The notes: generated from the sequence alone by a model not told the origin. DNA of 36,164 nucleotides from Bigelowiella natans CCMP2755 (GCA_000320545.1 ADNK01002957.1:1-36164), one strand, 5' to 3'. Shown: positions 16,912-33,614, counted from the first letter of the stretch. Program-made: numbers and translations.

Positions 16912-18156
16912 TCAATAGTTCGATTTTATAATTTCCCAAAATGGGTCCTTGTATGCTCCATATCGGATGCAGTTGTCCCCATTTTCCTTACATGGATGGT
17001 TAATCTCTGTCCAAGTTCCTGGAGTGGCCCATGAGCACATAGATTCTAGTGCAAGAGCATTATTTCCCTTCTCAAGTCGCATGTATCCCATTTCCCCCCA
17101 GTATTCTCCCCATGAATTTCGCACAATCCAGTATTTATTTCCGTCTTCATCCTCACCCCAGCCGGTTACAGAAACAATGTGATTGATGTCCCGATCTTGC
17201 TTTTTATCGTCTTTCATGATCCCCCCAGTGTAATCAAGGATGGGCTCGGCATCGATTCCGCATGCTATGGGACCCCTTGTATGAATTTCTGCCATCATCT
17301 TCAATTCTCCTCGCACTTCACCATACTCCGCAATCGTTGCATTGGGAAAATAATCAATTTCGGCACACCTGCCTCCCATGGATTTAAAGGTGCTGCAAGT
17401 ACGACACACATTCTGGTTGTCACATCTGGTATTAGCCGATCTACAGAAACCCTCCGTGCTTTCTTCCGAACATGCAATGTACTGCTGACATGTATCAAAA
17501 GGGACGAATCCAGAAGTTTTAACGAATTCGAAAGCTCCCGTAGCAGAGCCTCCGTGACATGAGCCTGCAATATCCATACCGCAGTTGAGGAGGTATTGGA
17601 TCGCTAGATTGATCTCAATCCCCTGTGCACTTCGTGCAATCTTGATACGGTCAGCTAGCGTAGAGAGCGCGCCATGTGCCCAGCAGCTGGCCAACAATTA
17701 TTTAACAAAAACATACTTCAATTCATGATCACTCAGTTAACAACTGTCTGTTCTTTCTATTCCTATGAATCAGGGAATTCAGTTGTATACCTTCCACAGT
17801 ACTGTGGGATATGTTGGTTCAAATTCTTAGTTAGGTATGAGACGCCAGATATGTTGCCCCAATTGAAATCCGTCGGTAGGTTCGATGTGTTGATGTAGGT
17901 ATGCGGAACTGGGAGTTTGTAGTCGTTCCTCTTCTTATGCCCTTTCATATGCTGAGGTTAGAGTAAGAGCATGCTATTAACTCATCTGTAACTTCGATAG
18001 CATTCACACCAAGGCGGATGAATCTTCTACCTTAAATTCTGAGACGTATCCGTGCTTGTGCTGTAGTGTTCCGACAATCAACGCTGCAATAATGACACCC
18101 CGAAGTCTCGAGGAAAACGACAACTCCGATTGAAACGGGTGCAGCATTGGGATCAT
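16912..18156 (-). CDS. CTSZ: Cathepsin Z/X (papain family C1A cysteine carboxypeptidase), 353 aa, 3 exons
   Basis: Exons 18156-18031, 17951-17791 and 17686-16912. Catalytic region NQHIPQYCGSCWAH carries the cathepsin-X-specific HIP insertion; also INHIVSVTGWG (His) and YWIVRNSWGEYWGE (Asn), a short prodomain and an N-terminal hydrophobic stretch. Confidence 0.95.
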
Positions 18157-18599: not shown

Positions 18600-20475
18600 A
18601 TGACGGGATCGAGTTCGGGCAAAAGGCAAATCGGTGACGGGGAGATGAATAAGCAGGAGCGCAAGATAGAACAAAACAAGAGTTACACAGAAGTGAAAAG
18701 GGCCACAGAAACACAATCGAAAAAGCTACTGGGTGCGTAAATGTAGCGAAGTATTTGTACGAAAACTCACATACATCGATGTGTTGTTGAGGCAGGAATA
18801 GATTCGGAACATAAGCTCCGGTCCGAAAACCTTCCTTTCGATATTGACGTGGTGATATTCATCTTTCCGTACTGCCGTTATTACCATGCCACACTCAATG
18901 GGTCGCATGATCCGTCTTCTTAGTGGTATCCTCGCTTAAAACGGCACACCTATAAAAGTTTCTTCTTACCCCTCACACGACGAGAAGCACAGGTAGCATT
19001 TTACCCAACATGCATGAATAATATCGGGCGTTCTGACGTATAATTTGCTGTCGTCGCCCAATTGAAACAGGCCATCCTGAATCACTATCAAACCGCGTAA
19101 GAAGAGCCACTGCTTATCATCCTAACAACGTTGAAAGCATTCTCAGCAATCAGCTGAGCAATCGATAGGGTGGTGAACGATTTTTGTTTCATCATTGGTT
19201 TGTGTGTTGCTTCGGTGTCCAGATACTTAGCGAGGCACCGACTCCGTCGATCTGATGTCCAGGCAAGAGGAATATTTACTCACAACCAACAGTGCTTTGA
19301 ACAACACAATACCATCAAAATTGGATGACTGATTACGAAGAATAATGTAGAAGTATATCTACATGATATTACTAGCTAATGATGATTATTATTGTCATTA
19401 TTGTCATCATCATCATCATCATCAATTGATTCAGGTCCTTGAAGCTCTCGAAAGAACCCTTGATAAGTTGTTTTGGAAGAGGTTCAGGGGAAAGAGCGCA
19501 TTCTTACGACTTTGCGGTTGGAATGTCACAAACGCACGCACGCACACTCCCACACGCATACTTATCTTTCTTTAAACTGCGTTTATCGAAAACCACCGCT
19601 CAATCGCACATTTCTTTGATTTTATTGATATTGTCATTACCCCACTCTTGTTCCCCTTACTACGCACGCACGCTGCTGTATACAGGAAGAAGTCCCAAGG
19701 ACGGGGACCCGCTTGACAAGTAGTACTTTCTACTGCATGCTTATATATCAATATAACGACGTGAAGGCTACCTTTAATAACACAGAAGAGAGAACGTGCT
19801 CCCTCTTATCGCAGTAAGACTACACAATTAATATACGTGCACATTCTATTTCTTCTGTGATCGATCTAGGACTAAGGTGTGGGCAATGTACACGAAGCAG
19901 CTGAAGGAGATATCAGGAAAGAACGCATTCACGCAGAAGGGAGCCTACCGCGAAATTGACGTCAACTTGAAGCTACGAGCTATTGGAAGAGTACGGAAGC
20001 TGAACAAAAATCCCTTCCAAAGCTATATTAAACTAACCGCTGACCGCCCATAGTGATAGATCATCACTTCGTCAGCCGATCCTATTCCTTTTGTCTTGTA
20101 GGTTAATTACCTCAGCGTATCAAATGGCGCAGAAGCGCTCGCATTGCTGCTATCTTCTGAACGCGTGTACACTGACCTGCACGATTGGCTCAGGTCAGGT
20201 CTAGGAGGAAGGATTCGTAGCTACATGTTTTGTTAGCGATTATCTATCTGCTGCTGCCAGATGGAGAGCCGTATAATTTGTCATCATCATCACCACCGTC
20301 ATTATCATCATCATCACCAACAATCACCATCAATCATGAAACCGTTGAATAATAGGCATGGAGAGCCAGAGCAGATTGTTCTGAGAGAATGGGACGAGGA
20401 TATGCGAGTAGATCGCGAATTCCGAGTATACGTTCATCAGTCGAAGATATGCGCTATTTCTCAGTCAGTAGATAT

Positions 20476-20516
<41 letters not shown>

Positions 20517-22125
20517 GTTCTTAAAAGCACAGAAAGAGAGGAGTTTTCAAAACTGAGTGTACATCGTCGTTTGCTGCTGATAGCAACGACGAATAGGGAG
20601 AGAAGAAGAATGGCTTTATGGCTTACGGAAGGGGGAGAGAGAGGAAGGAGGGGGAGAGGGGATATCAATCCTCATAATCCGATCAACGCGTGTGTGAGGC
20701 TCATGCGTCTTGTTCGGTTTATTATTGGCACTGATTTCCAGCTACTTTGCTGCTGCTGCTGCTGCTGCAATAGGTACGACCACTACACATACTATCCGGA
20801 GCTCGCACAACACAAAGCCACCATTGAAAAACTGATTCGGGAGGAATGGGCAAAGATACATCTAGAGGTATTATCACGTATCACGGACCACGAGTATGCT
20901 TTAGGGTTGAGGGGGGGGGGAACAAGGAGAGGGAGACCGATCTCCTCAATCCCTTCTCAAAGGAGAAATATCTCATAATCAAGTATACTGATATCAACAT
21001 GAAGAACATACATCCCCACAATCGTCATCATCATAATCATCATCATCATCAGCGCAATGATTTATATTGATAGCACCACCTTCCTCTCCCTTCGCTTCTT
21101 TCTCTTCCTCTGGTTCTCTTCTCTCCATCATCATCTTCTTCTTCTTCATCTTCTTCTTCTTGCTCCGCTTCTTTTCTTCTTCCAAGGTTGGGATCCACTC
21201 GTATTGTATGGACTTTGTCTACATCCCAGCAGCTGAGAAGTCAGCGAGAGTCAGAATGGTGCGCGACGACCACCAGCTATCATCCTAATCAGTGGATAAT
21301 ATAAATCATATCAAATGATAATAGTAACAATAATAATAATAATAATTAATCTTCTCTGTGAATGAAGTATGTGACTTTCACTAGGAAGCATAACTGCTGC
21401 ACCTAACAGCAGCCATAATACCCCGATGAAACCTACCGTGCACATATCATCGTAGTAATGCGTGCTGATTGAGCAGCTTTCTCCCCCCCCCCCTTCCTTA
21501 GATCGAAATAAGCCCATTCCTCCCATGCACAGGGCCTGCATGCTTCAGCTGGACGAAAGATAGGGTTAGTGGTGATGATGCGTCTCGAGTGAGAGAAGAT
21601 ACTGGGGGGGGGGGGGAGGGGGGGGGATAAGAAGAGGACGATGATGAAAAAGAAGAGTAAGGAGGGGGGGGAGGAAAATAACCTTAATGATGACAACGAC
21701 GGCGATGACGACGACGATGAGGAAGAGGAAAGCAACTACTGTGGTGCATGTTGTACGTCTATATGGTGATAGCAATGTAACTGTTGTAGCCAAATAACGA
21801 CGCTTCTTGCTCTTCCTTATTATCATCATCATGCAAGAAACTACCATCCCTAGTCACAAAGCATCAACGCGATGAACAAACACCAATCTCTTCCAATAGG
21901 ATGTGCTAGAGGGACGCTCACCCTTTGAGTTTCGGCTTGTAGAGGAAAAGAAGTACGGGAAGGAGGATGAGCAAAAGCAGCAGCAGCATCAATCCCTCCT
22001 GACTCAAATTGTAGTCATCAATAGTACACTATTGTGTAGTAGAAGTAAAAGTTATTGAAGAGGTCTCCCCCCTCTTCCCAACCGACCCTTCTTGCAGAGG
22101 ATTGATCATGCTAATGTGCTTGTGT

Positions 22126-22170
<45 letters not shown>

Positions 22171-22230
22171 TGTGTGTGCTGCTGTGATGATGATGATGAT
22201 GATGAACTAGGTATAAATTAACGATGATGA

Positions 22231-22262
<32 letters not shown>

Positions 22263-23393
22263 ACTATGGTAGGTGGAAGCTAATTGGGATCGACGATGGT
22301 GTGCTCAGAGTGCTGATAATGATGATAATAATAATGGCCATTTTAGCATTGGAACAGAGACGAGATACTATAAAGAGGTCAGTATTCAATCCCTCATGGT
22401 TCTTCGTAGCATTGCTACTTGTTATGACCCCCCCCCCCCCCCCGCCCCCTCTCCTTCTCTTGTGCGTGTGCGTGTGTGTGAGAGTGTGTTGTAGGAGTAA
22501 TTTATTCTCTATAATTTCTTTCTCCGCCCTTCCTTCCTCCGCGTATGCTGCTGCAACCACAACTACCAGATCTGGGGCGAGCTAGGGTTAATTAGAGGGG
22601 GAGGGAAGGATGCAAAGTCCATGGCGAAATGGAGTGGTATTGCGAGAAGGGTAGCATTCAGTTGTGGTCTTGGGGTGGCCTCATTCTTGGCGTTTCGAAC
22701 GGCGGCGTCCTCGTCGTTGGCGTCGTCTTTCACATCATCGCCATTCTCAACTTCAGGTAGCTCTGATGCATAAGAGAGGGAGAGGGAGAGAGAGAGCACG
22801 CCTAATGATTTGTTACATCTATTTATTTTGCTTAATAGCCTTGATCGGAGGTGGCACTGACATTTTCAATTTAGTCCCGATGTTTCTTCTTTTTCCTCAT
22901 TCAAACGACTCGAATCCATCTTCTTTCCCCCCTCTCCCCCCGCAACCCCTCCCCCCCCCTCCCTCCTCCGTTGTGACACGAACGATACCAAAGAGAGTTA
23001 CCACTTGAAAGAATCTGCTACTTCTGATGACAATACTACTCTGGCAAGGCTATCCCGATTAGATGTGTATAAGAGAATAACACTGCTACTTTACATTCTT
23101 GTCAGTAATCGGTCATCGAAGGGCCTGTACAGCTATTAGTGTTGGCGTGATGATAAGGTAAATAGATACACATGATACCAATGATGCCTGGAAGAATGAT
23201 GATGATGACGATGATGATGATGATGACGATGTGGTATCGTTGCTTGATTGTTCCACACCTCAATTTATAAACACTCTCTGCCCCTTGACTTTCTTTCAAT
23301 ACAAAGAGCTAATGATAACTCTTCCCCTTCATACGAAAACTAAGGATATCGATTAGATGACTCTTTATCCCTAGTCGCTTAATCTTTGCATCT

Positions 23394-23441
<48 letters not shown>

Positions 23442-23510
23442 TTATATCTCTTTCTCTCTCTACATGAAGCAATCGTCATTATCATCATCATCACCATCAT
23501 CATCATCACC

Positions 23511-23543
<33 letters not shown>

Positions 23544-23624
23544 CCCATTAGTTTCCTCTTGAGCATCATTCACTTCTCCAAGGACTACAACAACAGCAGG
23601 TATATTATATGAAAAGCACGGCAA

Positions 23625-23658
<34 letters not shown>

Positions 23659-23809
23659 GGCAGAGTTCGCGGAGACCTTTGGAAAGAGAGGAGGAGGAGG
23701 AAGAGGAGCCACCAGCAGCCGCTGGGAGAGGGTAGTTTTTGCGTGTCGCACACATCCAAAGTGTGAATATGTGCAGATATATCTTTCTGTCATTTTGGTT
23801 AATGTATTG

Positions 23810-23843
<34 letters not shown>

Positions 23844-24096
23844 ATGAATACAGTATAGCTTTATTCGTATACGGCACTTTGAAGAGAGGGTTTCACTGGC
23901 ACGGGAAGTTTCTCCAACGCAATGCAGACTACATAGGTATTATTAGGAGCCCTTGGCACTCTGTGTGTCATCGTAAATCATTATTGTACTCCTCAATATC
24001 CTCGTAATAGATGTACTTAAGAGAAGGGGGAGGAGGAGGAGGAGGGGGATGGAATATATCGCAGCTGCTGCTTCAAGCTGTAGTTTATATTATATA

Positions 24097-24135
<39 letters not shown>

Positions 24136-24396
24136 TTGTATGAGAGACAGATGTACATACACATCTTGCGAAGGCCGGACCGATTTTTCCCCTTTTTCTT
24201 TTTTGTTCTTCTTCTTCTTCTTCTTCTTCTTCTTCTTCTTCTGTTATTATCTTCACACTACGAGTACTATCCTAGGAAAAGGCAAATCTGTGGAGAAATT
24301 TCCGCTTGTATTTGGCTCGTCTGGCGTTCCTTATTGTCTCTATGATCTCAAAGTATATACTATGCGTATACACACTCACACACACACACATATACA

Positions 24397-24449
<53 letters not shown>

Positions 24450-24723
24450 AATATGTATTTATTTATTGTAAATACAGATATACTAAATAAAATTTTATGT
24501 TTCACCACGATAAGAAGAACTCTGGTAGATAAATACATAGCGCCTCTTTATTCGTGTCGTGCTGCTGCTATCGTGTCCTTGTGGACTAGAAATAATAACG
24601 ATGATTGGCTGCCAACCACTACTAATACTACTGCTACGGATTGAAACATCGTCAATACAACAACGATAACAACAACAAGAACAGCAACAACAACTACTAC
24701 TACTACTACTTACTACTACTACT

Positions 24724-24754
<31 letters not shown>

Positions 24755-25762
24755 GCTACTACTGCTACGAGAACATTGTGTTATCCGAATTATCAGGGCA
24801 GTGGGTACCAAGTTGAAGGCGAGCTATACTGGTATTCCTGTGTTAGGATGTGTGATGAGATGAGCGATGCTGGTGATAATGATGATGATGATGATGATGA
24901 GGGTGGTAGATATCAATGATTGAGGGGGATCTAAGGATGGCAGTAAAGAAGCATCTTGTGACAGAAACTCCACACACGCGTACATGCTCGAGTATTTCTC
25001 CTACAATAGGGTAGATGAGGAGACGTTGGAAGGTTTGGACGAATATGAAGGTATTAGATACTATAGGCAATGGCGAGAAGGGTGCTAATGGGTGATAGGA
25101 TGCTGCGCTAACGATAAGTAATATAAATGTGGTGATAGAATGCTTCACACGCAAAGGTGTCATCAAAAAGCATTATATACGGAGGAAGATCAAGATCGAA
25201 GCGGTACGGAGTCAAGCATGCGGTTACAGCGGCCAGACGCAAACCTCGATGATTGCTTGCTAGATTTCGCCGGGAATCAGAAAAGCACACATCGCCTTGA
25301 TCGTTATCACCTTCCATCATCGTTATGCCCACGCTGCAAACGTCGTGCATGCATGCTCCAATATATCATGTTCATCATGACTGCTACCTCTTGCTAGGAG
25401 GGTGATGGGATCAGCGTTGGCGCTTTTGTATACTTCAAGTCATCGTCCAACGAGGAGCTGAAGGCATTGGTGATAATGATAATTAACTACAGACCTTTTA
25501 ACACCGCGGTGCTAGGAATACACACTCTGCCACGCACGATGCGTGCTTTCAGCCTATTGACCATTGTAATCACGTTGCTGCTTTCTACCATTGCCAGCAA
25601 TAATTGCAGCATGCGAGATGTACATGTTGGGGGTTTCTTCCTTTTATTTCTTCTGGCTGTGTATGGCTGCTGCAGGAATTCCATCCTCGATATTCTCTTT
25701 CATATCATAAGAAGAATTATGATGCCATTCGTCATATCCAGGTTGTCACAGAAAGATGCCCA

Positions 25763-25804
<42 letters not shown>

Positions 25805-25814
25805 CACATACATT

Positions 25815-25855
<41 letters not shown>

Positions 25856-25932
25856 TTGGTAGCGTCAAATACTCCGACCACACTGTCTGCATATATGAGG
25901 AAACGAATAACCCAAGGGGGATGATAAGGGTG

Positions 25933-25973
<41 letters not shown>

Positions 25974-25978
25974 TCTCT

Positions 25979-26017
<39 letters not shown>

Positions 26018-26102
26018 GCACCACACGCAGGTGAAGCAACAGCTGTACCTTGAAGACGAACACGGAGAAGGAAGATTTGGTGTGGACCTGAAGTTGGGAT
26101 GA
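18600..26102 (+). CDS. CDC123/R2K-type ATP-grasp domain - hydrophobic linker - gamma-glutamylamine cyclotransferase (GGACT/AIG2-like) fusion protein, ~647 aa, ~28 exons
   Basis: Phase-consistent exons: 18600-18633, 18796-18851, 18924-18992, 19071-19096, 19223-19262, 19435-19516, 19686-19719, 19870-19990, 20102-20193, 20356-20463, 20774-20867, 21187-21258, 21502-21564, 21900-22010, 22273-22377, 22570-22756, 22839-22850, 23133-23157, 23552-23599, 23660-23731, 23854-23936, 24276-24352, 24797-24831, 25010-25050, 25157-25203, 25398-25469, 25676-25741, 26031-26102 (1944 nt, no internal stop). The two domains are well supported; the linker exons and start codon are less certain. Confidence 0.72.
18796..21950 (+). 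other. Coding region of the CDC123/D123-like (R2K clade) ATP-grasp domain
   Basis: Motifs FDIDVWYPRLKRHTYKSFFLPL, AFLRLCGRSPKD, EALALLLSSERVYTDL, IVLREW, REFRVYV, AISQYDHYTYYPEL, YCMDF and IEISPFLPCTGPACFSWTKDRDVL. Confidence 0.88.
24402..24445. repeat. (TA)n microsatellite, intronic
   Basis: Directly visible. Confidence 0.95.
24655..24768. repeat. Compound (AAC)n/(TAC)n microsatellite, intronic
   Basis: Directly visible, imperfect. Confidence 0.9.
25767..26014. repeat. (CA)n, (GA)n, (CT)n, (CA)n microsatellite cluster in the last intron of the ATP-grasp-GGACT gene
   Basis: Directly visible. Confidence 0.95.
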
Positions 26103-26923
26103 ATGGATGGTAGTGAGGCCGAGGGGACGGAATTAGCGAAGATCACGAACTCTTCCACAGCCGGTATTATGATATGCAAGCGAGTCATACGATAGAAAGG
26201 AGGGAGGGGGTGCATGAATCTCAAGCTATGCTTCTTTAATGCTATGTTACGCACTCTGCCGCGAATCGTACTGTAAGAGTTACCGAAAGGCACATCGAAT
26301 CAATGCACAATGAAAACACGCCAATACATGTCGCTATATATGGGATGGTGCCCCGTACGAGCCGTGGCATTCGGCTAGCCTATTTGTTAAGCGTATAATG
26401 TCATGTGCGGCAAGCTGCCACCATCGCATATAGCGCGCTCACCAGCTCCATTGCAAGTTCCGAACAAAGCAGTGCATGCTACTCATTTTCAACGAGGATG
26501 TTAATGAGAAGACTGATAGGCGCGATGATGAATGTGTGACTCAGAACAATAGACGCAAGCAACTGTGCACAGCCTAGAATTCAATGGAACACCAACTCGT
26601 CATTTGTGCGTGTGCGAATGCTGCATGCGCGCTACTATGGCTTGATACGCCACACCGTGGTGAAGTTGGAAATATAGCATATTGCTGAACGAGCAACAGC
26701 AACACCCGTGCCAGCGATGCTAACAACACAGCATGAGTGGAAGTATGCGCCATGTAAATTGTGAAAACAAACTTGAATTCTATCTCGCATGTGCACAGTT
26801 CTGCAAGCTATCAAATGTACGGATAGCATTCGAACATGCAGCCTCTGTGACCTGCGGACAATGCATGTCTTTTCTCTCGCAAAATTTTGATTTTATATAT
26901 TCACTGAATAGACGGGGGAGCCA

Positions 26924-30820: not shown

Positions 30821-33614
30821 ATGTCGCAGGGGGCTCAACATCGAGAGTTTAACGTGGGCAGGGAAACCCTTCCGTGGGGATTTTCACATCTGAAATCTGA
30901 AGAGAACAATGCTCAGAATAATTCTGTGACAAGCGCTGTTTGACAGATATCGCAGACGAGGAAATAAACGAGTCTGATTTTTATGTAGAATACTTGAAAT
31001 TCTGTGAAAAAGGATGAAATTAGCCTTATTATTCTTCTTCATCATAAGAATTTGCTTCCAACTAAGTCTGAATACTCAACGCGGTCAGGGCGGAGCCCCC
31101 GAGTTCAGGAGGGAGCATCCCACGCCCCTTCTATTAATCTCCCTTCATAATCATGCAGGGAGGAGATCCTTCATATGATCCGTTCCTATTTGGAGCGTAT
31201 TCTAATGGTGCTGAGTTGACCATGGACAACTTGAGCTTCCCTGGGAGTGAGAGCAACAGCTTTCTGGGAGTTGGCTCCACCAAAAGCAGCAACCTGAACT
31301 CCTTTGATCCATCATCTCTTTTGACCAGTGAAATTAGGGGACCCTTTGATGTAATTAAATTCCACATGCCTGTCTTCATAAGTAAGAAAATAAGTCCGTA
31401 AATCCCCAGAATAAATATATTTTTGAAAGGATATCAAAAGTATGATTGAGCATTCTGAAGATTCTTCCATATTGACTTTTCCTCCCTTCGATTTCAAAAG
31501 AAGATTCAGACTCTTAGTTACAGCTCCACCAAACTTCGTACATCTTCCCACAGCAACAAATAACTTTAATTGCTGATAATTAGCAAAAATCCGGATCGAA
31601 GGTGGAAATCCGGCCAACCAGAGTGAGTTCACGGAGAACGGTAAAACCACCAAATATCCACGTATAGTATCCACAAAGAAAACATTTACTTTCCATCTAT
31701 AGGCTGGCAAAAAAAGGGCATTGGAAACGGTTCCCGCTAAGACAGAGAAAAAGGAGAAGAGGACGCGAGCATCAAAACCTGGCCAACCACGCCCCCCAGG
31801 TCAACTTTTCATTTAATCGCAAGGCAGTCATTCGAATAGCTTCATGATTTTTCTCAATTTAAAAGGGTGTAATGGGAAAACTTCGACCTCCTTGAAGCTA
31901 TTCTGGTGCTCTCCAAAGGACTCAGGGGAACATCCAGTCGACTCGTATCAAGTGCAGAAGAGGGAATTTGTTACCGGTCAAAAGTCTAGGGTAATATTTA
32001 CTAGTCTCGACTCGCACTCAAAATTATGGTGTAGCTTTCATATTTTAAAACTTTAGAGATCTCCATGAAATTAAGTCAGTATCTTTCACTTCTTCAACCC
32101 CCTTCTCCCTTTAGGTTCCGCCTTGGCAAGATCTTTTCCCAAAGGCTGGTGTGGGGAAGACCTCATACGAACTACAGGGACTTTCACCTGGAACGTTGAC
32201 ACAGTTTAGAGTCAAAGCACACAATAAGATCGGATGGGGAAAATTCTCACGTGCGTCTGACCCATTTCCAACTGAGGTGCCGTCTGTGTTTCCCTCAATC
32301 TGCATCTTACCGTTGGAATTTCTCCGTTCATTGTGCATTAATTCCTACCCACCTTTGAAGTTACCTTTGATACCATATCTGCAATTCTCAGAATGCCCCG
32401 CAGAAACGAAATTTGAAAGGAACTTTGGATCCATCGGTAATTGCTCTTTGATAATTGCTCTACTAAATTGATTCAAACTAAAGTTACTCTCGCAACCTTA
32501 AAAAAAGATATTTTTTCTCGAATACGTTTTCTTTGTCTAAAGATGATCCAGTGGGATGTTCCAAAAATACGACTGGGTAAAGGAGCTTTCGGGATTGTAT
32601 TCCGTAGCGCCATCGGAGGCTATCGAGGAACCACCGTAGCAGTAAAGATCGAACGTAGCGTTCACATCTATGGAGACAATACGGAAGAAGAGAAGGAAAA
32701 ACTTTCGGTAGATATCAACAGCATTGTGGAATGAAGCTGTAATATAACGCTTATTTATCTCGTCATTTTGCCACTACACAGTCTTGGCTCCGCGAGGTGG
32801 AAATTTTGTCCTCCCTGCGGCATCCGAACCTAGTGCTGTTTATGGGCGCTTCGCAGTGTGAAGGCCGTTTGTATATCCTTACGGAGTATATGTCGGGAGG
32901 TTCCCTTGAGAACGCAATTTATCGCCCAATCAATCCATTGCAGGACCGGTAAGCGAGTTAACCTCGCCCCTCTCTCTGCGATTCTATCTCTGTTGTCATC
33001 ATTCTCACTTAAAACGTTACTCTAGGACCTGGCTTCAGTCCATCCTCGCTCAAGTTGCTTCGGCAATGGAATTCCTTCATTCGAATGATCCACGTATAAC
33101 CCATCGTGACCTCAAGCCCGCGAATGTCCTCCTTGACAAGACCTGGGTTCACGCCAAGGTAGGAGAACAGATTTTTCAGAGAAGCATGTGCAGATTATGC
33201 AGTTGTTCAGCTATTTTTTGTTTCTCCATGAAAAAGGTGTGCGACTTTGGATTTGCGCGGATGCACAAGAAAGAGGTCATGTCGACGCTCACCAAGTTTG
33301 CGGGGACAACACCTTACATGGCACCTGAGGCACTAGGAGAGGAAGATAACGTTTCTGCCAAAGTCGATGTCTACAGCTTTGGGGTAATGGCTGCAGAGGC
33401 CCTTATCCAAGAACGGCCTTTCCCAAAGTACACAAATGCGGAAGTAATGAAAGCAGTCTGCATTCGGAATGAGCGTCCATACAATCTTGAAGGGCGGGTT
33501 CCGAAGCAGGTGCAGTCGTTGATTGAGGAGTGTTGGGACACAAATCCAGACAATCGACCTGTATTTGCCACCATAATCAAGCACCTAAACTCGTTAGGAT
33601 GGAAGATGGTGTAG
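30821..33614 (+). CDS. TKL-family Ser/Thr protein kinase with an N-terminal fibronectin type III domain; 5' exons uncertain
   Basis: FN3: PGQPRPP..SLKLFWCSPKDSG..SYQVQ..YELQGLSPGTLTQFRVKAHNKIGWGKFS. Kinase: LGKGAFGIV, VAVK, REVEILSSLRHPNLVLFMGA, TEYMSGGSL, HRDLKPANVLL, VCDFG, GTTPYMAPE, DVYSFG, CWDTNPDNRP. Confidence 0.92.

Follow-up and report, generated by a model that had tools for sequence, protein, structure and literature searches.

GGACT, the gamma-glutamylamine cyclotransferase, cyclises the gamma-glutamyl group of gamma-glutamylamines to 5-oxoproline, freeing the amine (titles of PDB 3juc/3jud), a finding credited to Oakley et al. in 2010. In butirosin biosynthesis, as Llewellyn et al. 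reportedly described in 2007, the ATP-grasp enzyme BtrJ adds a gamma-glutamyl group and BtrG, an enzyme of the GGCT fold, later removes it as 5-oxoproline. This pair is a precedent for combining the two chemistries, by analogy of function only: BtrJ and BtrG are separate bacterial proteins of a gene cluster (PMC13707489 gives a list of the btr genes), BtrJ lies outside the R2K clade, and the pair is not a relative of the fusion described below. Binding and hydrolysis of ATP are documented for canonical CDC123, a chaperone in the assembly of eIF2 (PMC12860950). Its ATP-grasp fold is of the R2K.1 type; R2K enzymes share the ExR motif with peptide-bond-forming ATP-grasp ligases and have been predicted, as a prediction only, to act as protein-peptide ligases (PMC4431377). 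The current study concerns a gene of Bigelowiella natans CCMP2755, on a stretch of 36,164 nucleotides (nt; ADNK01002957.1:1-36164, hereafter the window), in which a CDC123/D123-like ATP-grasp module and a GGACT module are encoded in a single reading frame. The gene lies at 18600-26102 on the + strand, to which all coordinates below refer unless stated otherwise. That the gene, the D123-GGACT fusion and its orthology to a protist family are real is, in our judgement, almost certain.

Gene structure and transcript evidence

An exon-by-exon phase check gives 25 coding exons, which amount to 1896 nt, or 631 codons and a stop. The region is devoid of any long open reading frame (ORF), as the exons measure 26-187 nt and the introns 234 nt on average; nearly every intron is rich in CA, GA or TA dinucleotide and in trinucleotide microsatellites (e.g. 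20478-20515, 22110-22170, 23395-23435, 24090-24135, 24400-24450, 25770-25855 and 25935-26015), and the read comparison passed over these as repeats. The whole span is supported by the phase check, by AG/GT borders at every exon once cut offsets are applied, by collinear matches to a profile of the protist family and by a frame that runs open to a TGA. The frame tracked through the exons has no stop between 20102 and 26102, and none from 18600 when the 5' exons placed by homology are added.

Contigs from runs X1, X3 and X7, which belong to three studies, served as transcript evidence; we take them to be RNA because the introns are missing from them, and their strand was read from the GT..AG borders. 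Ten listed GT..AG joints lie on the + strand (20865>21185, 21257>21501, 21563>21899, 22375>22568, 22752>23102, 23933>24273, 24830>25009, 25047>25154, 25202>25397 and 25468>25675), and contig pieces are contiguous also over 20465/20777 and 22010/22273. In X7, the depth label of one 1565-nt contig stands on all listed joints from 20865>21185 through 25047>25154. Joints 23157>23854 and 24352>24797 have no listed rows and were deduced from piece lengths, shared contig depth and the arithmetic of the records. The four linker exons between the modules (111, 105, 187 and 52 nt; 455 nt in total) were fixed by RNA, the frame playing no part in their definition; they are open and reach FVYGTLKRG in the right phase, for which we estimate a chance probability of about 1e-4 (0.95^151 x 1/3). 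A check on the transcript across 21900-23936 had been proposed, and spliced contigs from three studies cross this interval, which does not favour the refuting case of transcripts that end before ~23100.

Exons 1-8 (18600-19990) were placed from homology, AG/GT sites and phase, exons 1, 4 and 5 being the least certain. A 539-nt extension of an X1 contig upstream of 20354 fits the summed length of the upstream exons, and the exon at 20102-20193 supplies, with its 3' end, the loose contig end before 20354. Downstream, contig pieces at 26029-26150 indicate that the transcript continues beyond 26150. A raw RNA run, X21, yielded 24 reads from 6% of the run, too thin for transcript ends or strand. 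Unspliced contigs cross the introns at 22803-23089 and 24803-25038.

The original prediction, made from the sequence, had described 28 exons and a product of 647 amino acids (aa). Its many small exons and its one stop-free frame through the linker into GGACT hold, but the counts are corrected to 25 and 631. The motifs that it quoted (RSPKD, LREW, EFR, AISQY, DF, IEISPF, FVYGTLKRG and LDEYEG) are all found in place on the + strand, as is its stop codon at 26100-26102. The peptide YFSYNR, which it had read as coding ahead of VDEETLEG, is intronic, since exon 21 begins at 25010.

Searches of two protein collections brought up no identical protein, a B. natans model of the gene being absent among the matches. 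A phmmer search with exon 10 against 1.84 billion representatives gave no identical match, where a fragmentary model inside a 50% cluster is possible; the best matches were fragments and members of the fusion family, with 49-68% identity. The B. natans gene thus appears to be without a correct public model.

A conserved protist family with two modules

The B. natans gene belongs, as an orthologue, to a D123-GGACT family that is conserved in protists. Searches begun with a B. natans paralogue and continued with the fused homologue P0051 recovered more than 100 clusters of 500-790 aa that carry both PF07065 and PF06094. They come from Amoebozoa (Planoprotostelium, Physarum, Balamuthia, Pelomyxa), Heterolobosea (Acrasis kona), stramenopiles (Heterosigma, Seminavis), a colponemid, MMETSP transcriptomes and many metagenomes. 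In all ten homologues submitted to hmmscan, D123 at ~100-320 is followed by GGACT at ~310-630, with 52-72 bits each (52-69 for GGACT). When 28 homologues were compared with the whole window by tblastn, the exons were matched one by one and in order. A 530-position profile of 42 homologues matches the + strand collinearly from profile position 16 (18792) to 524 (25777), with E values of 3e-15 to 0.05, and has no notable competing match elsewhere in the 36,164 nt. The original prediction had implied that the architecture is rare and had suggested a search of protist sequences for the same domain pair. That search was productive, many homologues carrying both domains in one chain, and the rarity is not upheld: public proteomes of protists commonly contain the architecture, where it is automatically annotated as gamma-glutamylcyclotransferase.

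Across the 42 homologues, the residues that are invariant or nearly so comprise, in the D123-like half, the Arg of FLRL, RSPKD, SER, GEPEQ, EFR, the Asp of xDF, E-x-S-P-F, C-T-G and F..W and, in the GGACT half, YGTLK, GVPY, GE, LDEYEG, KG.Y.R and a tail Y..I.HI.VKQ..Y. The B. natans gene retains them all, and the family signature RLCGRSPKD … ExSPF-x-CTG … LDEYEG … HIxVKQ is complete in its exons 6, 7, 13, 21, 24 and 25. Purifying selection across supergroups is shown for both modules. Among 156 retrieved proteins that were scanned, the combination of Arg and ExS (RLCGRSPKD with ExSPF) occurred in 78 of the 90 that bear GGACT, and D123-like proteins of the ExN type, the B. natans paralogues included, were without GGACT. 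Since the signature tracks the fusion, we argue that the two halves have co-evolved. Members closely comparable to the B. natans protein, with the same domain order and invariant motifs, include the 'gamma-glutamylcyclotransferase' P0032 of Acrasis kona, Planoprotostelium fungivorum PROFUN_07061 (P0071), Physarum transcript 05824 (P0025), Heterosigma akashiwo P0035 and the 'AIG2-like family' protein P0127 of Seminavis robusta. The conserved blocks are 50-87% identical, the B. natans exons match them collinearly, and RLCGRSPKD, GEPEQ, EFR, ExSPF-x-CTG, YGTL, LDEYEG and HIxVKQ are shared; the B. natans protein differs in its linker of ~95 aa (typically 30-60 aa) and in having its gene split into 25 small exons.

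When 185,579 genomes of bacterial and archaeal species were scanned with a pattern, no relative emerged, within the limits of that pattern. In the full text of the literature we found no paper on CDC123/D123 joined with AIG2, GGACT or gamma-glutamylcyclotransferase, and in the 2015 R2K paper of Burroughs, Zhang and Aravind (PMC4431377) the word cyclotransferase is absent, so no such fusion is mentioned there. Databases label the members only as 'gamma-glutamylcyclotransferase', 'AIG2-like' or 'hypothetical'. The architecture is therefore already in databases, unnamed and unstudied, and the B. natans gene is one further, apparently unannotated, member.

Domain searches on the B. natans gene used single exons, and the whole-protein analyses (Pfam coordinates, alignment and folding) used database homologues; folding and fold search were performed on the nearest one, P0051. 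AlphaFold2, given the family alignment, modelled P0051 with a mean predicted local distance difference test score of 85.3 and a predicted template modelling score (pTM) of 0.84, and only the N-terminus and linker residues 371-382 were poorly defined. When this model was compared with PDB by Foldseek, Cdc123 ranked first (E 6e-11; template modelling (TM) score by target 0.66-0.68; 4zgp/4zgo) and mouse and human GGACT next (E 3e-9, TM 0.76-0.78, root mean square deviation 2.0-2.3 A), with GGCT, ChaC and ordinary ATP-grasp ligases lower. The P0051 sequence itself matches GGACT (E 5e-9) and human CDC123 (E 7e-5) in PDB. The central claim of the original prediction, that one transcript and open frame link an R2K/CDC123-like ATP-grasp domain to GGACT, is thus sustained, with both folds confirmed on P0051.

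The N-terminal two thirds of the B. natans protein are a divergent CDC123/D123-like (R2K.1) ATP-grasp module. Exon 1 (18600-18692) is tentative and begins at the first in-frame ATG after a stop, with a GT donor and phase 0. Exon 2 (18792-18851, ending SEHKLRSENLPFDIDV) matches family profile positions 16-36 (E 5e-8) and P0042 in tblastn, and exon 3 (18924-18992, WYPRLK…) positions 36-59 (E 7e-7). The weakest are exon 4 (19071-19096), placed by splice sites and phase, and exon 5 (19223-19256), the fitting AG..GT choice among eight right-phase candidates, the lengths of the exons together fitting the 539-nt X1 extension. Exon 6 (19435-19516; positions 69-112, E 2e-6) ends in AFLRLC, exon 7 (19686-19719), found by motif, tblastn and family profile, encodes RSPKDGDPL, and exon 8 (19870-19990) matches positions 119-157 and passes the phase check. 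Exon 9 (20102-20193, ending LLLSSERVYTDLHDW; family profile E 3e-12) has as its 3' end the loose end before 20354 in X1 and X7 contigs. Exon 10 (20356-20463), seen in RNA contigs, encodes GEPEQIVLREW and EFR and has the strongest matches (family profile E 3e-15): alone it scores 22.3 bits against Pfam D123 (PF07065; E 8e-5, cut-off 24), and in a six-frame genome search the locus scored 23.7 bits, or 25.9 with its neighbours, which is over the cut-off. RNA contigs also define exon 11 (20774-20867; E 3e-7), exon 14 (21900-22010; positions 293-310), the C-terminal part of the module (…PFEFRL), and exon 15 (22273-22377, …NWDRRW…; positions 317-335), the last family-conserved block before the linker. 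Exon 12 (21187-21258) is bounded by joints 20865>21185 and 21257>21501, and exon 13 (21502-21564), with IEISPFLPCTG…FSW, is supported by joints and by the profile (E 7.5e-9).

The D123-like motifs lie at 19688-19702 (RSPKD), 20381-20392 (LREW), 20417-20425 (EFR), over the 20463/20774 junction (AISQ|Y), at 21208 (MDF) and at 21502-21519 (IEISPF). Several active-site residues of R2K.1 are present: the second Lys/Arg of the S2-S3 loop is the family-invariant Lys of RSPKD (19697-19699), ExR is EFR, 97% conserved in the family, and the strand-4 Asp, human D233, is the Asp of MDF at the catalytic position (21211-21213), equivalent to the invariant D263 of P0051. Two others are altered. The strand-2 Lys, 'absolutely conserved' in the R2K template (PMC4431377), is replaced by the Arg of …FLRLC (19507-19509), invariant in the 42 family members; its equivalence to K104 was deduced from its distance to (S/A)P(K/R)D, and also from K/R alternation among the B. 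natans paralogues. Where (D/E)xN is expected (human D246xN248), IEISPF keeps the Glu (21505-21507) and has Ser (21511-21513) for Asn, again invariant in the fusion family; occasional polar residues in place of this last-strand Asn are noted in PMC4431377. Compared with canonical CDC123 (human 8phd, S. pombe 4zgn-4zgq), the fusion has the same R2K.1 ATP-grasp fold, as modelled for the homologue, and the same ExR, Asp, last-strand acidic residue and basic loop residue, but only ~18% identity, Arg for the strand-2 Lys, ExS for DxN and an added GGACT. Beside the active-site motifs stand two cysteines (RLCG and CTG; C110 and C284 in P0051) that the fusion subfamily keeps at 90-100% and that ExN-type paralogues lack. 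The D123-like half probably binds ATP; that it is a ligase is a tentative reading of its motifs, to which we give less than an even chance.

The C-terminal ~190 aa are a GGACT module with the substrate-binding YGTL motif and the catalytic-position Glu intact. Exon 18 (23854-23936), joined to exon 19 by 23933>24273 in the same contig, starts the module with LFVYGTLKRG (23861-23890; FVYGTLKRG at 23864-23890), which aligns to IFVYGTLKRG of 2kl2/1vkb; it matches the family profile (E 1.6e-9) and scores 19.1 bits with Pfam GGACT/AIG2-like (PF06094; E 0.002), under the cut-off of 22.8 for this single short exon as query. Exon 19 (24276-24352, containing FPLVFGSSGVPY) is given by RNA contigs and the profile (E 1.7e-6), and the 35-nt exon 20 (24797-24831) by joint 24830>25009. 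Exon 21 (25010-25050; joints, family profile E 7e-4) encodes LDEYE of LDEYEG (25035-25052). Its last Glu (25047-25049), invariant and equivalent to E470 of P0051, aligns with the LDDFE Glu of the solved mouse GGACT and corresponds to the catalytic human E82, the residue marked by the human E82Q structure 3jud. Exon 22 (25157-25203) is bounded by joints 25047>25154 and 25202>25397, exon 23 (25398-25469) by joints, and exon 24 (25676-25741, …YDAIRHIQ; profile positions 490-524) follows joint 25468>25675. The coding part of exon 25 (26031-26102; contig pieces 26029-26150) begins with VKQQLY…, which holds the family-invariant VKQ..Y, and ends in the TGA at 26100-26102.

All GGACT exons are covered by the family profile. 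Single exons are too weak as queries against PDB: exon 18 alone gave E 0.65, with GGACT as the top matches, and exon 19 alone gave noise. The Pfam GGACT profile matched nothing in the B. natans genome and missed this gene also, its exons being too short, which makes the search uninformative on further copies. The claim of an intact GGACT-like domain, FVYGTLKRG...LDEYEG, is supported, YGTL and the catalytic-position Glu being kept and the fold being matched on the homologue. With the GGACT of human (3jub/3juc/3jud) and mouse (1vkb), the homologue's C-terminal domain shares the fold and 28-31% identity, and YGTLKRG and the Glu of LD(D/E)xE are conserved; the animal protein is free-standing and ~150 aa long, whereas here GGACT is the C-terminal domain of a ~630-aa protein with the extra conserved tail Y..I.HI.VKQ..Y. 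The GGACT half is likely to be catalytic. At rank 36 of the fold search stands PDB 9i09, part 2 of a chromatophore transit peptide of the rhizarian Paulinella with a GGCT-like fold, so the fold can be non-catalytic; the catalytic residues are conserved in the B. natans protein.

Linker, paralogues and neighbouring genes

The B. natans linker is variable, ~95 aa long and includes a hydrophobic stretch; linkers in the family span 29-114 aa. The lineage-specific exon 16 (22570-22756; joints 22375>22568 and 22752>23102) holds the first hydrophobic run, which peaks at a 19-residue Kyte-Doolittle mean of 1.49. A second, short run extends from exon 17 (23106-23157; phase check, part of a 56-nt piece after joint 22752>23102) into exon 18 and covers ~14 residues before GGACT strand 1, too short for a lone helix. 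Of 37 family linkers, eight hold a 19-residue window with a mean of at least 1.6; the long ones often have two adjacent hydrophobic runs, and the short ones an amphipathic patch only. A single transmembrane helix parting the two domains, as a family trait, is unlikely, with most members lacking one and long linkers tending to two stretches. Because most members are without a hydrophobic segment, the two domains most likely lie in the same compartment, and because the N-terminus is hydrophilic, this is probably the cytosol. Both halves would probably face the cytosol, while some members, perhaps the B. natans protein too, could possibly be tethered to a membrane; a membrane hairpin in the B. 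natans protein has only partial support. An opposite-strand ORF (22563-22799, - strand; 78 aa, acidic), antisense to linker exon 16, was considered and rejected as a gene: the flanking RNA joints are GT..AG on the + strand, and we ascribe it to sequence composition.

A long ORF on another contig of the assembly is 100% identical to JGI model Bigna1/90870, which identifies the genome as that of B. natans. In it, at least eight more D123-like loci exceed the Pfam cut-off (L001-L008; contigs C3582, C909, C3090, C3306, C3124, C3123 and C1581). They are mostly long ORFs with few or no introns, bear (S/T)RSPKD, LREW, EFRCFV and IELNPF, and all belong to the ExN type and carry no GGACT. On C3123, L006 and L007 are separated by ~9.7 kb and identical to each other, and L004 has an in-frame TAG. 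The paralogue at L005:1324-2331 (-) has at its C-terminus a hydrophobic stretch, then RLRRRR and the stop codon, which resembles a tail anchor and stands at the position of the fusion protein's hydrophobic linker. These loci recall the non-canonical, multi-copy and fast-evolving R2K.1 paralogues of amoeboid protists, among the CDC123-like proteins described from amoeboid eukaryotes, Legionella and giant viruses (PMC4431377); unlike the fusion, those keep ExN and lack GGACT. A canonical CDC123 is encoded on contig C237 (28500-33500, +) by exon fragments FPKLN…APTDA, EMRCFV and IDMHPFG…LLF. In these fragments the second basic loop residue is Thr and the last-strand Asn is His, which may reflect the reading of the fragments. 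The separate canonical CDC123 indicates that the fusion gene is a paralogue and not the eIF2 assembly factor; eIF2-gamma binding or a role in eIF2 assembly is unlikely for the fusion protein.

In the flanks, a papain-family cysteine protease exon (16912-17697, -) and a protein kinase catalytic-domain exon (33066-33614, +) were recognised by eye, with no evident link to the fusion gene.

Possible roles of the fusion protein

The explanation towards which we lean, by a small degree, is a one-chain enzyme in which D123-like ATP use and GGACT cleavage serve the same substrate. The GGACT half would cleave a gamma-glutamyl-amine (isopeptide) bond by cyclisation and release 5-oxoproline and the free amine, and the D123-like half would bind and use ATP on the same substrate. 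It may do so by forming a gamma-glutamyl or other amide bond, with gamma-glutamyl as a temporary tag or a protecting group, on the model of BtrJ and BtrG, or alternatively by holding a protein substrate. The family would then spend ATP on making, holding or exchanging a gamma-glutamyl-amine bond, which the GGACT half would resolve. The narrower proposal, made already in the original prediction, that both halves act on one gamma-glutamyl substrate seems to us possible and somewhat doubtful. A self-contained, ATP-driven gamma-glutamylation and de-glutamylation of proteins, for example of lysines or other amines in cytoskeletal or membrane proteins, would be a bolder version still, and an improbable one.

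Several points weigh against this explanation. If a ligase and a cyclotransferase acted on the same bond with no intervening step, ATP would be wasted in a futile cycle. Ligase activity is on record for no CDC123-family protein, CDC123 being an ATPase chaperone (PMC12860950), and as judged from the alignment the fusion family fixes Arg for the strand-2 Lys and Ser for the ExN Asn. At the level of the gene, 5' exons 1-8 are supported by homology and splice logic, not by RNA, and contigs cannot establish one end-to-end molecule. Unspliced contigs also cover 25175-25426 (intron 22) at a depth similar to that of the spliced form in all three runs, which suggests that intron 22 is frequently retained; the frame would stop ~19 codons into the intron, with loss of the last third of GGACT.

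In a first rival explanation, the D123-like half is not a ligase and would instead be an ATP-driven binding or assembly module that holds a protein or peptide or tethers the enzyme, leaving GGACT alone to perform the chemistry, i.e. the removal of gamma-glutamyl-amine links or caps. For CDC123, no activities are on record beyond the binding and hydrolysis of ATP and the binding of eIF2-gamma (PMC12860950; titles of PDB 8phd and 4zgn), and the Lys-to-Arg and Asn-to-Ser changes fall on Mg/ATP-contacting positions of the template (PMC4431377), both of which speak for such a module; but 42 sequences from distant supergroups keep ExR, the Asp, the ExS Glu and the RSPKD Lys without variation, as fits a working active site, nor is any partner protein known. 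We consider this rather unlikely, and the strongest of the rivals. The futile cycle would disappear if the order were reversed, so that GGACT first releases the amine of a gamma-glutamyl-protected precursor and that amine (or glutamate derived from 5-oxoproline) is then ligated to another carboxylate by the ATP-grasp half, a two-step exchange on small molecules and not a reversible protein mark. GGACT works on free gamma-glutamylamines, as the title of PDB 3juc indicates and as Oakley et al. reportedly found in 2010, and the high pTM suggests a fixed two-domain body able to hand on its product. However, no pathway genes adjoin the locus, the flanking protease and kinase being unrelated, and the pattern-limited genome scan gave no prokaryotic operon counterpart; this order of events seems to us a slim prospect.

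Two separate genes, a D123-like one followed by a GGACT one and joined only by read-through or by the assembly of overlapping transcripts, would dissolve the fusion altogether. A contig over two genes is indeed no proof of a single transcript, and the joints 23157>23854 and 24352>24797 are deduced, but the frame stays open and correct through the linker exons, 455 nt that were defined by RNA, the family has conserved blocks both before and after the linker, and the two domains occur together in a single chain in more than 100 homologues, of which many are transcriptome ORFs labelled 'complete'. The two-gene explanation is close to refuted, and we give it hardly any weight beside a one-chain enzyme.

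The finding is less singular than the original prediction held, the fusion being a conserved enzyme and not an isolated case, and it illustrates how division into exons of 26-187 nt can let a well-conserved gene escape a reference annotation. Ligation by CDC123-like ATP-grasp proteins has been a question since 2015, ATP binding and hydrolysis alone being documented. The conservation of the fusion across several supergroups, together with a signature almost confined to it, offers, in the Rosetta-stone sense, a clue that gamma-glutamyl-amine bonds are what this branch acts on. If the gamma-glutamylation and de-glutamylation of proteins were true, it would give the CDC123-like R2K clade its first substrate chemistry and protists a new reversible protein mark.

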